NCBI GenBank assembly: GCA_025558095.1
Contig: JAIVFI010000025.1
Location: 434,001 to 498,000, forward strand
DNA from: Hyaloraphidium curvatum SAG 235-1
Taxonomy: Eukaryota; Fungi; Monoblepharomycota
DNA: 64,000 bases
Reading direction: 5' to 3'
Positions within the stretch are counted from its first letter, which is position 1. Each line of letters begins with the position of its first letter. Under the pieces are notes generated by a model. That model was not told the origin of the DNA. It did not search any database and saw nothing but the letters and a program-made list of their open reading frames with translations. A program made the translations under genes and the position numbers. Below are positions 3,426-10,392 of this stretch, in pieces.

Positions 3426-6016
3426 TCACTTGGCGGACAGGAACGACGCGATCCGCTCCCACATGCGCTGCATGATCGCCGGCTCGGGGACCATGTGCGT
3501 CAGGTTTGCCACCGGAAGCAGCTGCACCTTGTCCGACTCCATCGCGCCGGCCCGGAACAGGTGATCGACGAGCTGCAGCGAGTGGGAGAAGTAGACATTG
3601 TCGTCGGCCGTGCCTGCGAAGGACCAGCGGGCATGAGCAACGCCTCTACAGGCGCGCAGACGCCGAGCGAACCGTGAATGAGGAGCAGGCGCGCGTTCAC
3701 CTCGCTCCGGTTGAGCAAGGACGACTCGGCGTAAGCCTTCGTCGACGTATTCGCCGAATCAGCCAGATCCGGCACTCCCAGGTAACGCTCTGTGTAAGTA
3801 GTATCGTCTCCAGTGACGTTTCATTGGAGTTCCAGCAAGGTGATAGCGTCATGGACTCACAGAGCAACCATTCGGTGACCGGAGCACCCGCAACGGCGTT
3901 GGCAACCTTGAGCCTGCCGATCTTCTCGCCCTGAAAGAACGTTAACAGAGTCGAGCGCCGGAGGACGCGCAAGCCCACCAGCATGGCCATTGCCGCGCTC
4001 ATGTATCCGCCGTAGCTCCAGCCGTTGCAGCCCAAGATACCGTCCTTGGCCACGTCGACGACTCCCTGGCCTTTCAGGACGTGCTCGACGACTCCGCGCA
4101 CGCCGTCGCACTGGTCCATGACCGGAGCTGGGAATGCGAGAGCTTGAGTGCCGAGACAGCTCCATCCTTCGCACGGCACACACCTGTCAAGAGATCGTAC
4201 TTGATCGCGCGCTCCCACGCTCGTCCCCGTCCCGGCGTGCCCCTCCCGTCGAGCTTCACGACCACCGACCGCGTCCGATCCGCGAGCCACTGCAGCACCA
4301 GGTTCGGCAGGCACGCGTGCTGCACCTCGAGGTGGTGCGGCCCGCCGTAGACCTGGAGGATCACGGGCAGCCGCTCCTTGGCCGGATCGAACCCGTGCGG
4401 CCGGATGACGGCGGTCCAAAAGTCTTTCGGGGCCGGAAGCTGCTCCACGGTGACGTTTGGGGAGAATCCGGGAGACTCGGCGACGGAGGGGACCTCGAGC
4501 ACGGGCGAGGTGGAGGATGGGGAGCAGCGGAAGAGGAAGGTCCGCGGCATGGTCGCCAGGTCCGTACGAACGAGGGACAGGAACCGGCCGGTGCCCTCCG
4601 TCCCGACCAGCGCCGCGTCCTCCACGCCCTTCCCCTCGAACGAAGACACCCGGCGCGTCGCCAGCTTCCCGTCACCGCCGCGCGATACGGCAAACACGTA
4701 GTTCTCGGTCGGGTTCGGCCCGCCGCGGTAGTAGAGCGTCCCCGCATCCTCGTCGTAGCCCACGAGCTTGGTGTAGCCGGCCGTCGGCTCGACCCAGGTC
4801 TCGACCAGGGCGGCCGCCTTGCCGGAGCCCGGCGCCGGCAGCGAATACAGCCCAACCCTCCACCCGGGCTCCTCCTCCGTCGCGAAAAGGAACTTCCAGC
4901 CTGCCCAACCCTGAGGGAAGCCGGCGCCGGCTTGTTGGTCCCAAACGAAGCACGGGAATGCCTGATCGATGTTGATCCAGGCCTCGTCGCGCACGGCCAG
5001 GAGCTCCGTCATGGCGCCCGTGGCAAAGTCGGTGCAGACGAGCAGCTTCATGTCGGTCTGCTCGCGGTTCATGACCACCACGGCCAACGGCGAGGGAGCC
5101 CCGCTGTCCGCCGGCGCCCGCGGCCAGTTCACGTTGACGACGTACGGGTAGCGGTCCCAGTCGATCTGGAGCCAGACAACGTTGTCCTTTGAATCCAGCG
5201 AGACGACTCCGAGCTTGACGGCGGCGTTCTTCCGTCCGGGCCGAGGGTAGAAGAAGGGCTGCGGTGCCTTCTCGGGCATGATCGGATCCGAGATGTGGAA
5301 GACCTCGACTCCGTCGTTGTCGGTCTGCTGGAAGCACAGCATCGACGAGTCGGGCGAGGGCCAGTAGCCTGAAGAGCATCAGCTAGCGATCAACGCTTCG
5401 GCACCTTCGCCAACGCACCTGTAAACCTGTGCATCTCCTCTTGCGCGACGAATTCGGCGAGCCCGTTCGGTTTCGCTTCGGTGCCGCCAAACGTGAGCTG
5501 CTCCTCCACATTTCCGTCCAAGCTGACCCTCCACACGTCATTGTCCCGCACGAAAAACACGTAGTCGTCGGTGAATTTGGGGTCGATGGCCGGGCCCACT
5601 CCAGAGTCCGTACCCAACGGCCTGACCGACCCTGCACCGAGGTCGTAAAGGTACATCCTGCCGCTGAACACTGTCAGCACCGCGCTGCCCTCGCGGTTGG
5701 TCTGGTACGAGATGAATCCGCGCGCCGCGACGCGCATCCGCTCCAGCAGCGCCTTCTCCGCGGCGGACAGCTCGCCATCGGCGGGCTTGCCGATGAGCTT
5801 CTCTGGGCTGAGGATCTCCACGGCCTCTGCGGTGCCCGACGCGTCGGCCGGCAGCGCGACGCGGAACAGCGTCTGCCTGTTGGAGCGCGGGCCGCTGCGC
5901 AGGAACACCGCGTCGGCGCCGCCCGCGCCGGGGACGACGCGCACGCCGACGGGCCGCCCGGCGGCGAAGCGGCGCGTCTCGCTGAGGTCGCGCAGGAAAG
6001 TCGCGGGGACCGCCAT
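3426..6016 (-). CDS. Dipeptidyl peptidase IV / S9B family serine peptidase (multi-exon)
   Basis: AEFVAQEEMHRFT|GYW, YPRPGRKN, VYGGP, nucleophile GWSYGG, LIHG|TADDNVYF, C-terminal His (LTHMV); stop at 3426-3428. Confidence 0.92.
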
Positions 6017-6153
6017 GGCGCGTCTCTGCGACGCTGAGTGTTCACGGCCGTGCCTCTAAGTGATCGACGCACCCCGCGCACGCCAACGTCTCCCACGGCC
6101 GATCCCACCCGTAGCCGCGCCACCGAGGCTGCCGTCGCGCGCATTCAGTCGAG

Positions 6154-6663
6154 ATGCCTGCCACTATCTCGACCGGAAAAGGTGGGCGGGCCCTGAGGCG
6201 ACCGATGCGGCCATTGACGCGTCTCCCAGTTCCCCCGCCCTCCCAGCTCGTTCCTTCACCGCCCTCGTTCAGCAGCTCCATCCTGATGGAGGGCACGCCG
6301 CAGAGGCGACTCGTGGTATCTGGCCAGGTCGGCTCCATCCCCGGGGAAGGCGCCGGACCTTTCTCCGTGCCATCGGACTACTCGGGGCAGGTCCAGGCTG
6401 CATACCGCAACGTTGCGTCGATCCTTGAGGCCAACGGCATGGGCTGGGCGGATGCCGTGCGTACGGGTGTCTTCATCGTCGCTGGCGCCACCGCGGAGGA
6501 GACGACGGCGCGGATCGTGGAGTTTCGTCGCATCCGGGACGGCATCTTGGAGCCCGTCTTCAAGAACAGTACGCGGGGACCGCCTGCGAGCACCCTGCTC
6601 GTGGTTGCCGCGCTCGCAGCGCCCAACCTGCTCTTCGAGATCGAGGTTGAGGCTGTCGCTTAG
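6154..6663 (+). CDS. RidA/YjgF/UK114 family protein
   Basis: LVVSGQVG, Q...AYRNVASILEANG, PPASTLLVVAAL, LFEIEVEA; true start uncertain. Confidence 0.85.
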   Translation: MPATISTGKGGRALRRPMRPLTRLPVPPPSQLVPSPPSFSSSILMEGTPQRRLVVSGQVGSIPGEGAGPFSVPSDYSGQVQAAYRNVASILEANGMGWADAVRTGVFIVAGATAEETTARIVEFRRIRDGILEPVFKNSTRGPPASTLLVVAALAAPNLLFEIEVEAVA

Positions 6664-6935: not shown

Positions 6936-8750
6936 ATGTCAAGGCGCGCGTCGCCCCGCAGCTCCGGGGCTGAATTAAATGCCGACGGCCTCCCGGGGTC
7001 TCCTTCGTCCGCCTTTTCCACGGCGGCCTTCAGCGAGCCGCCGTCGTCGCCGGACGCCGGGAAAACGGACAAGGGCCCCCGTGTGATGTCCGTCGACGAT
7101 CTCCGAGCCCTGGACAGCGAACTGCACGCGCTGGTGGACGCGGCGTGCGGTGCCGGCAAGAAGCGGACGGAGCGGCCTACGAATCTCGCCGTGACGGTCC
7201 TCGTCAACTGGGTCGCGGTGCGGCAGACCGTCACGAACTACAAGCAGCTCCAGCCCGGGATCTCCGTCGCGAACTTGCTCGGCAGGCAGAGCCATCTTTG
7301 GGGTGCGTTCCACATCCTACTTCATCGCGGCTTCAAAGTCGCTGATCAAGCGCATACTGCTTGTAGCATTCGGCTTCTGCAACGTCGACCGTCGTGACGA
7401 TTCTGGCTCTTTGCACCTAGATGGCATCCTCCGGCCGCACTGGCGATCTCTCTATTACCTTCTGCTGGCCATCGTGCACCGGAAGATCACCAGGCCGGAC
7501 TTCAACGACGAACTCGGCTTTCCTGTACCGGACGGGGCTTCGGAAGAAGATTGCCCCGCTGTGCTCCGAGCAATCAAGGGGAAGTACCGTTCCAGGCTTG
7601 ACCGGGGCCTACAGATCAACACTGGGTGAGCCCCGACAGGCACTTCGGCCCATGGCATTGCTAAAGCGCTCCTCCAGCGCGTTTATCTCGTCTGACAAGT
7701 GGTCCAAGATCCAGAGTGCGCTCGATGTCTGGGCCGACCACGCCCCGGACCATTGGCGGGAGATGCTGGCCCGCCACGCGGCCGGAAACCCCTGCACGGA
7801 TCGGGAGATGTTCGAGTGGCTCGCCACCATGCCCCTGGTTGGCAACTTTCTCGGCTGGCAGATCGCCCAGGACCTCGTGATGCACTCGGGAGGCGTCGTG
7901 GTGAAGGACCCCGACTTCGTGCAGCTCGGTCCGGGGGCGAGCAAGGGTCTGGCAATGTTTGGGATGCAGAACAGGTTCTGGGATCTCCTGAAGAAGTGCA
8001 ACCGCGACCTCGCAAAGCTGAAGATGGAGCGGTGGCAGCGAAAGGACGAGGACGGCACGCGGGAGGTCGTGCCGTTCGTGCTGTCGGCAACCGAGCTGGA
8101 GCACGTCCTGTAGGTCTGCCTTTGCTTCCTCTACCCATCATCCTGAAGGGTCCTTCCAGATGCGAGATCCAGAAGTACGTCAGGGTGGTCTCTCGTGGCC
8201 CCGTGCCGGATGGGACAAAGTTCAAGTCCGGCACAAAGGTGCCGGTCAAGCCGAAGCTCGCGCGCGAATTCAGGGAGCACTACGGCATCGATGATTCGGC
8301 TGCGCCTCCCAAGGGGAAGAAGAGGAAAGCTTCGGTGGTCGACAGCGACGCCGAAAGCGAGGACACCCTCGTCGCAACCCCAAGCAGAACGAAACGGCAG
8401 CGCAGGATGCTGAAGAAGGACCTGAAGAAGGAACTGCACGTCACGACAAAGGGCGATCGGACACGCCCCCCGGCATTCAAGCAATCTCCCTCCAAGATCG
8501 TGGCCAAGGAGGCCGCAAATGAGGACGGCATTTACGAGGTTCGCCTTTCGTTTCAACCGCGGCGTGTTGGCCATCAGCTGATCCCCTTCTCTAGGTTGAG
8601 ACCATCGTCAAGACTCGCGTGCGTCGGGGCGTCCGGGAGTTCTACATCAAGTGGCTTGGGTACAACGATGATACGTGGGAGCCGGAGGACCACCTCGGTG
8701 GATGCGGCAGGATGCTCAGGGCATTCAAGCAGGAGCATGGGCTTTGCTGA
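6936..8750 (+). CDS. aGPT-Pplase1-like (alpha-glutamyl/putrescinyl-thymine pyrophosphorylase clade 1) DNA-modification domain fused to a C-terminal chromodomain; 5 exons, ~530 aa
   Basis: Exons 6936-7302, 7367-7625, 7678-8109, 8160-8538, 8595-8750 join in frame (1593 nt) via four canonical GT-AG introns of 64, 52, 50 and 56 nt. Motifs FCNVDRRDD, TGAFI, VGNFLGWQIAQDL, DFVQLGPGASKGL, ELEHVLCEIQKY. Chromodomain IYE|VETIV...FYIKWLGYNDDTWEPEDHL. Confidence 0.85.
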
Positions 8751-8847: not shown

Positions 8848-10392
8848 ATGAGCCCTCCGCCATTCGCCGCCGAAATTTTCAGCGGGCGTCCGGAATCGCT
8901 TGAAGAGCTGCGTCGTGGCGTCGATGACGCGCTTTCCGCGCTGTCTGGGGCGCCACCGCCGTCGGGACCACCGTTCGTCGGCTCGACCGCGGAGGAGCTG
9001 GCAGCGCGGTTCGAGCCGCTCTTTGAAAAGTCTTTGGATTCGCCGTCTTCTTCCACGGCCAATGCCATCCTCAAGGACGTTGTGGCGGCGTGTGTGCCGC
9101 CCTTCCATCCTTCTTCTGTGGCCCACCTTCATACGCCGGTCTTGAACTCTGCTGTCAAGGCCGAAGTGGTGATCGCGGCTCTGAACCAATCGATGGACTC
9201 CCTCGATCAAAGTGGCATCGCAACGGTGGCTGAGCTCCGGGTCCTGGATTGGTTGGCGAAGGACCTTGTCGGTCTCGAGGGACCCGCGGTCGGCGGAACA
9301 TTCACGTCGGGAGGTACCATGTCGAACTACTTTGCGACCCTTCTTGCACTCCATACCCACTTGACACGTGTTCATGGCTGGGATGTGCGGACGAATGGCC
9401 TGCCTCCCGAGCTGCTCCCAAAGCTCCGCGTCCTGACTAGCGGCATTTCCCACTTTTCTATCGAAAAGGCCGTATTGCAACTCGGTCTCGGAACTCGTGC
9501 CGTGGTGAAGGTTCCCGTGGATCCGAGCACCTTTCGGATCGACGTCGCAGAGGCCGAACGGATCGCTGCCGACCTGGTTGCCGACGGCTTAGTCCCGTTC
9601 CTCATCGTTGCGACAGCTTCCACTACCGACTTTGGATCCTTCGATCCCCTGGAGCCGTTGGCCGCCATAGCGCAAAAGCACAACTGCTGGTTCCATGTTG
9701 ATGCCGCGTATGGCAGCGCTTGCCTGCTGTCGCGCACTTTGCGCGGGAATCTTGCGGGAATCGGCAAGGCCTCGAGTGTAACACTGGACTTTCACAAGGC
9801 ATTCTTCCAGCCAGTCTCTTGTGGTGCTTTGCTCGTTGCGGACAGCTCCTGCTTCTCCCTCGTGACCGTCCTCAGCGATTATCTCAATAGTGAGGCTCGG
9901 TTGGACGCTGGTATCCCGGATCTCGTCAACTACAGCCTAATGACGACCCGAAGATTCGACGCATTGAAGCTGATTGTCTCCATAGCCGAGATTGGCCTGG
10001 ATGCGATGGCGAAAATGGTCTATCGCTTGTTCGAGCTTGCTCGCTGGGCCCACGACGAGATGTTGCGGAGGCAGCTTCATGGCAGCGATGCAGGGGACCT
10101 GCATCCTTTACACGAGCCCGAATTTGGCTGCCTTGTCTTTCGGTTCATCCCGCGCGACACGGAGGCGCCAATCGAGCTGGTTGATGCCGTGAACAAGAAG
10201 GTGCCCGAGACGCTCTTCGATCGTGGGACGGTGGTCCTCGGACACACGAAGGTGGAGGGGATCGGCAATGCCCTTAAGCTGACTTTGAACAATCCCGCGG
10301 TGCTCGAGGAGGAGCTATCCCGGGTCCTGGACGCGGTGCAAAGATGCGGGGGGGAGGAATGGGAGCGGATCATGGATCGAGCCAGATCTTGA
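8848..10392 (+). CDS. Group II PLP-dependent decarboxylase, L-2,4-diaminobutyrate/lysine decarboxylase (Ddc/DesA)-like, intronless
   Basis: AHLHTP, NQSMDSLDQS, FTSGGTMSN, HFSIEK, HVDAAYG, PLP-lysine motif SVTLDFHKAFFQP, TTRRFDALKL. Confidence 0.9.
   Translation: MSPPPFAAEIFSGRPESLEELRRGVDDALSALSGAPPPSGPPFVGSTAEELAARFEPLFEKSLDSPSSSTANAILKDVVAACVPPFHPSSVAHLHTPVLNSAVKAEVVIAALNQSMDSLDQSGIATVAELRVLDWLAKDLVGLEGPAVGGTFTSGGTMSNYFATLLALHTHLTRVHGWDVRTNGLPPELLPKLRVLTSGISHFSIEKAVLQLGLGTRAVVKVPVDPSTFRIDVAEAERIAADLVADGLVPFLIVATASTTDFGSFDPLEPLAAIAQKHNCWFHVDAAYGSACLLSRTLRGNLAGIGKASSVTLDFHKAFFQPVSCGALLVADSSCFSLVTVLSDYLNSEARLDAGIPDLVNYSLMTTRRFDALKLIVSIAEIGLDAMAKMVYRLFELARWAHDEMLRRQLHGSDAGDLHPLHEPEFGCLVFRFIPRDTEAPIELVDAVNKKVPETLFDRGTVVLGHTKVEGIGNALKLTLNNPAVLEEELSRVLDAVQRCGGEEWERIMDRARS

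Follow-up and report, generated by a model that had tools for sequence, protein, structure and literature searches.

A clade 1 aGPT-Pplase domain of phage type fused to a chromodomain in the early-diverging fungus Hyaloraphidium curvatum

The window analysed here, a 64,000-nucleotide stretch of Hyaloraphidium curvatum DNA, contains a five-exon gene whose product joins a helical domain of the aGPT-Pplase clade 1 family to a C-terminal chromodomain. The protein is conserved and is probably an active, chromatin-targeted enzyme of a known kind, to judge from the residues that it retains. Clade 1 is a partner in phage thymidine hypermodification to which the literature searched assigns no job, and a compact fungal version with its catalytic motif intact and a histone reader attached makes it possible to ask directly whether unusual bases are processed or written in fungal heterochromatin.

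Gene structure and surroundings

The five exons lie on the plus strand and splice into a frame of 530 aa with no internal stop and a GC3 of 0.81. The public protein record P0001, titled hypothetical protein DFJ74DRAFT_645181 [Hyaloraphidium curvatum] and annotated with PF18723 and PF00385 (NCBI), is also 530 aa long and identical in sequence to this spliced model. The original prediction of a five-exon frame of about 530 aa was therefore correct, with exact coordinates, and every motif quoted in it is present in the order given there. It had also called the gene hidden; this is true of the bacterial ORF track alone and not of the public databases, since an identical annotated protein exists. 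By the searches made, the gene is single-copy in the genome.

Exon 1 (6936..7302) starts with ATG and encodes a low-complexity N-terminus and the first clade 1 domain helices (aa 1-122). Exon 2 (7367..7625) carries the F-C-N-x-x-R-x-x-D motif, with the invariant R131 and D134, and the invariant R161. Exon 3 (7678..8109) includes an HhH-like core (G264/F266/Q270/D274), a GPG loop at 293-295 and E350-H351, and is separated by intron 3 from the remainder of the E-H-x-L / C-E motif. Exon 4 (8160..8538) contributes the putative catalytic C354 (codon 8161-8163), E355, K358-Y359, an NLS-like stretch (8308-8328) within a basic and acidic linker, and the first chromodomain cage residue, Y478. The chromodomain body, with cage residues W499 and Y502, and the stop codon are found in exon 5 (8595..8750). 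The four introns (7303..7366, 7626..7677, 8110..8159 and 8539..8594, of 64, 52, 50 and 56 nt, respectively) are all GT-AG, none has a length divisible by 3 and each includes a CTRAY-like branch motif 17-25 nt from the acceptor.

Upstream is a RidA/YjgF family gene (6280..6663, plus strand). It forms, with a DPP-IV-like peptidase gene (3435-6031, minus strand), a divergent pair which is conserved in three genomes. Downstream, a group II PLP decarboxylase gene (8848..10392, plus strand) starts after 98 bp. It is apparently intronless and most like diaminobutyrate decarboxylase, although its score against the bacterial enzyme (310 bits) is below the cut-off of 900; it was possibly acquired horizontally. 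As a pathway partner it was rejected since it is not beside either orthologue of the gene studied here.

Membership of clade 1

Pfam searches were run exon by exon, with gathering cut-offs of 25 bits for PF18723 and 25.1 bits for Chromo. Exon 3 alone scores 37.6 bits against PF18723 (aGPT-Pplase clade 1, now HMUDK_hel), and exon 2 covers positions 65-136 of the same profile at 17.9 bits. No exon of the gene matched PF18724 (clade 2) or the P-loop kinase domain PF18748. Nine positions do not vary across a set of 37 non-redundant clade 1 proteins, and the window protein keeps the expected residue at each of them (R131, D134, R161, F266, D274, G293, G295, C354 and E355). The original assignment to the aGPT-Pplase family is thus upheld, by the score of exon 3 and by these residues.

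The N-terminal part is more divergent. Only the Arg of the family ER motif remains (exon 1), and the PWTxD motif, N80 and T84 (gp50 numbering) are replaced in the window protein and in both of its orthologues. Conservation of these features in clade 1 is 81-95%, with PWTxD, N80 and T84 at 86-95%; they are not invariant, and the window protein is therefore still a clade 1 protein, albeit a divergent member. The part bearing PWTxD is the best conserved region across distant phages. Loss of this motif together with two further well-conserved residues means that contact with a co-substrate or partner has probably been altered in the fungal proteins.

Orthologues in two related genomes

The best matches to the gene are two syntenic orthologues on sequencing-run contigs L003 and L004. 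Their products, of about 520 aa and about 506 aa respectively, have the same layout and keep the nine invariant residues in spite of only 36-40% identity in the helical domain, against 54-63% identity for the neighbouring genes across the three genomes. RidA and dipeptidyl-peptidase genes adjoin all three loci, with a local inversion between the window and the orthologues. Another gene, which lies head-to-head with the orthologues and has a hydrophobic N-terminus and a faint O-fucosyltransferase match, was rejected as a partner.

In L004 the DNA is uninterrupted across the positions of introns 1, 3 and 4, and a single ORF of 336 aa carries both PF18723 (the second half of the helical domain) and Chromo. 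This confirms the fusion independently of the window gene. L003 lacks only intron 1 of the four, and its introns coincide with introns 2, 3 and 4 of the window gene, so that intron 2 is common to all three genes. Both orthologues have an intron just past the R-E-D-D motif (L003:5926-6010 and L004:5585-5673) which is not in the window gene. Since this intron is confined to the orthologues and intron 1 to the window gene, intron turnover appears to be rapid.

A tree built from the exon 3 region unites the three fungal proteins on one branch (support 96/97). Stand-alone proteins, P0008 and P0004 among them, lie nearest to this branch, and the tree singles out no donor. P0004 comes from a phage-like replication cluster that includes a thymidylate-synthase-like gene and a kinase. 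P0019, a clade 1 protein from a marine metagenome (L010:202-1179), shares the FCNxDRRDD motif with the window protein and sits on a long branch. The metagenome scans yielded no further eukaryotic loci.

Fold and active site

Sequence searches matched clade 1 to no solved structure. P0004, a close stand-alone phage homologue, gave a confident model (pLDDT 92.5) which was compared with 48,161 chains. The best match was gp46, a clade 2 transferase (Z 10.9, rmsd 3.8, 209 aligned residues), and the next structural neighbours were AGOG/OGG, AlkA, EndoIII and a queuine salvage hydrolase. For an orthologue model gp46 also ranked first in Foldseek, weakly, and the C-terminal half only of the orthologue P0003 gave Z 5-6.6 to gp46, glycosylases and DUF2419. 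The model of the phage homologue thus supports the HhH-glycosylase-like fold proposed originally, as a predicted property of the family.

A local hhalign alignment (probability 81%, E 1.3e-5) places E350, H351 and C354 on E243, T244 and C247 of gp46, with His replacing Thr at a metal-ligand position. In gp46, E243 and T244 bind metal and C247 attacks C6 of the flipped base (PMC11472151; PMC13458397). A weaker global alignment places F266 on the base-clamping W146.

The chromodomain

Exon 5 alone scores 46.1 bits against Chromo (cut-off 25.1), and the aromatic cage (Y478, W499 and Y502) is intact, as had been anticipated. The cages of the orthologues read F-W-Y (L003) and Y-W-H (L004, with His at the third position). 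The best solved matches are Chp1 (E 2e-9), CDYL and HP1, whose chromodomains read methylated H3K9 or K27. To judge from the cage and these nearest structures, the mark bound is most likely that of H3K9me heterochromatin. The nuclear, chromatin-associated role suggested at the outset is supported, as a prediction from the domains.

The genome has many chromodomain retroelements, among them numerous near-identical Ty3-type polyprotein ORFs (1498 aa) with a C-terminal chromodomain, which form a young family (L020-L031). Exon 5 resembles the orthologues more than it does retroelement chromodomains. Among nine loci compared, its closest paralogue is the chromodomain of L037 (L037:1456-2205, minus strand; G000 contig 13, about 118690-119440), where it is joined to a PhyH-like 2-oxoglutarate/Fe(II) dioxygenase (HxD...H...R). 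Its nearest Atlas clusters are viral, and at the third cage position it departs from the canonical Tyr. A paralogue of the dioxygenase with 51% identity (L041:1453-2517, minus strand; G000 contig 6, about 718085-718579) has no chromodomain in the same ORF. Joint action of the L037 dioxygenase and the window protein is only a lead.

Clade 1 in phages

The original prediction linked clade 1 to the attachment of amines or amino acids to DNA. The phage data do not bear this out: amine and amino-acid transfer belongs to clade 2 (AADT), and M6 gp55 could be left out of the reconstitution (Lee et al., PMC8989533). We confirmed that M6 gp55 belongs to clade 1. No report of the activity of any clade 1 protein was found in the literature searched. 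SP10 gp186 fuses a kinase domain (PF18748, aa 35-193) to a C-terminal clade 1 domain, and the Pfam name "kinase helical domain" probably derives from this fusion. The name was rejected as an indication of kinase activity, since the kinase domain of gp186 works alone.

Clade 1 is present in all four hypermodifying phages, and is beside or fused to a kinase in PaMx11, Sonora, SP10 and BouleyBill. Hypermodifying phages turn all leftover 5-hmdU into thymine, a step for which no enzyme is named in the literature searched, and the clade 2 intermediate together with a hydride donor gives thymidine. We infer that clade 1 may provide the thymine-forming step. SP10, on the other hand, makes glutamyl-thymine and clade 2 was not detected there (PMC5889632), which favours transfer by clade 1. 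Two phage clusters, from Microbacterium phage BouleyBill (L043:1357-2830) and at L007:3917-9310, combine a kinase, clade 1 and a divergent thymidylate synthase; clade 2 was not seen in the stretch examined, and they are good test cases for clade 1 chemistry.

Partner genes in the genome

Genome searches were six-frame and exon-wise, an approach which is insensitive to divergent, intron-split genes, and several had no positive control. The original prediction had pointed to TET/JBP dioxygenases and a 5hmdU kinase as enzymes to look for; at this low sensitivity neither was matched. The queries were PF12851 and PF20515 for TET/JBP (both among the searches with no positive control) and, for the kinase, PF18748 and the kinase adjoining P0004. 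Equally insensitive searches gave no match to clade 2 (PF18724) or clade 3, and identified one thymidylate synthase and no dUMP hydroxymethylase.

The genome includes at least six C5 methyltransferase loci. Two related single-ORF C5 methyltransferase-like genes (~460 aa; L013 and L016, G000 contig 12, 523184-524251 and 548189-549250) are 25 kb apart, and their catalytic motif seems to be WPSxPC compared to the usual GxPC. Another C5 methyltransferase-like match (L017, G000 contig 1, 1431206-1431832, minus strand) has two in-frame TGA codons and represents either a gene with introns or a pseudogene.

Possible functions

Our preferred reading, a tentative one to which we give somewhat less than an even chance, is that the protein erases or repairs oxidised thymine in silent chromatin. 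The gene, single-copy by the searches made, would have come from a phage or a bacterium and has persisted in at least three related fungal genomes; its product would act in the nucleus, where the chromodomain would bind methyl-lysine histone tails. To judge from the conserved and aligned residues, a 5-substituted pyrimidine would be flipped out of the DNA by the clade 1 domain and held at a metal site (E350, H351), and C354 would attack C6, as in clade 2. Because no kinase or donor pathway is evident, the likeliest substrate would be 5-hydroxymethyluracil or oxidised 5mC, produced by TET/JBP-type enzymes or by oxidative damage. The likeliest outcome would be removal or reduction of the hydroxymethyl group to give an ordinary base. 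Apart from the retained residues, the match to gp46, the phage gene contexts and the affinities of the chromodomain, the several C5 methyltransferase loci and the chromodomain retroelements of the genome speak for this reading. The same lack of a detected kinase also counts against such an eraser, since there would then be no phosphate leaving group. So do the loss of PWTxD, N80 and T84, the low-sensitivity searches that gave no TET/JBP match, the His in the cage of L004 and the glutamyl-thymine of SP10. Catalysis, substrate, product and histone mark are all what we infer for the window protein. The original proposal was of an enzyme that writes or processes an unusual base: processing is still plausible, while the writing of hypermodified thymine is less likely given that the low-sensitivity searches found no kinase and that clade 1 is dispensable in M6. 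Between the two, erasing is more likely than writing.

Alternatively, the protein may be a non-catalytic dual reader whose helical domain binds or flips a modified pyrimidine and so couples the base to histone methylation. The replacement of PWTxD, N80 and T84 in all three proteins, their faster evolution relative to the neighbouring genes and the failure to detect partner enzymes in low-sensitivity genome searches are consistent with this. However, C354, E350, E355, D134, D274, R131 and R161 are kept in three divergent genomes, and the cysteine is a residue that one would expect a pure binder to lose. We consider a reader of this type rather unlikely.

Writing, in which cysteine chemistry would join an amine, amino acid or thiol to the C5-methylene of hydroxymethyluracil in chromatin with methylated histones, would yield a fungal analogue of base J. 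The catalytic motif and, probably, the fold are shared with the clade 2 transferases, and SP10 has glutamyl-thymine with clade 1 alone detected. A diaminobutyrate-decarboxylase-like gene lies downstream, and phage 15599 uses diaminopropane as its donor (PMC13458397). Nevertheless, that gene is not beside the orthologues, transfer in M6 does not require clade 1, and the low-sensitivity genome searches revealed no 5-hmdU kinase and only one thymidylate synthase. We consider writing unlikely, and its more specific form, in which an amine- or amino-acid-modified thymine is written into methylated-histone chromatin downstream of TET/JBP or of a chromodomain-fused dioxygenase, is distinctly improbable. 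The latter, if true, would mean that a fungal genome contains a hypermodified base of the kind made by phages.

A glycosylase-like or lesion-trapping role in repair (base excision or a protective covalent DNA-protein link), or an RNA or nucleotide substrate, is suggested by the glycosylases and queuine salvage hydrolase that follow gp46 among the structural neighbours. We consider it improbable: gp46 is more than 2 Z units above the glycosylases, and the family signature is the E-x-x-x-C site and not the Lys/Asp pair that characterises HhH-GPD glycosylases. Finally, a mis-joined model or decaying relic, with a separate chromodomain exon or a silent gene, might be imagined from the many transposon-borne chromodomains in the genome, but is highly improbable in view of the uninterrupted L004 ORF, the open frames and synteny in three genomes and the affinity of exon 5 with the orthologues.

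Comparison with known systems

The window protein shares with the phage clade 1 proteins (M6 gp55, PaMx11 gp50, PhiW-14 gp72, ViI gp160 and the C-terminus of SP10 gp186) the Pfam match, the nine invariant residues and the order of motifs along the whole profile. It differs from them in lacking PWTxD and in having an NLS-like linker, a chromodomain and introns, and its locus has no adjacent kinase or dUMP hydroxymethylase. With the clade 2 transferase gp46 it has in common the E-x-x-x-C metal/nucleophile motif and, to judge from the model of the clade 1 homologue, probably the fold. It is not, however, a PF18724 protein, and clade 2 requires a 5-hmdU kinase, which was not found here in the low-sensitivity search.

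The chromodomain cage is shared with Chp1, HP1 and CDYL but here belongs to a single C-terminal domain on an enzyme fold, and is degenerate in one orthologue. In concept, base chemistry tied to chromatin recalls the base J system of kinetoplastids (JBP and a glucosyltransferase) and the plant chromomethylases, although their catalytic folds are unrelated to that of the window protein.

The architecture of PF18723 plus Chromo is already common in Basidiomycota, a different fungal lineage. A structure search with the orthologue model identified an ESM Atlas cluster with 139 members, all eukaryotic and most of them from Basidiomycota; 100% carry PF18723 and 81% Chromo. The basidiomycete proteins are absent from the 12 sequence matches of exon 3. 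Basidiomycete homologues of ViI gp160 and gp247 were noted in 2018, and no paper on the function of the combined architecture was found in the literature searched. Since this cluster carries it, the architecture is already known to databases, and the value of the present gene therefore lies in its testable chemistry and in the extension to an early-diverging lineage. New are the occurrence in this lineage, the support that the orthologues give, and the finding that the catalytic motif is kept and the N-terminal one lost.
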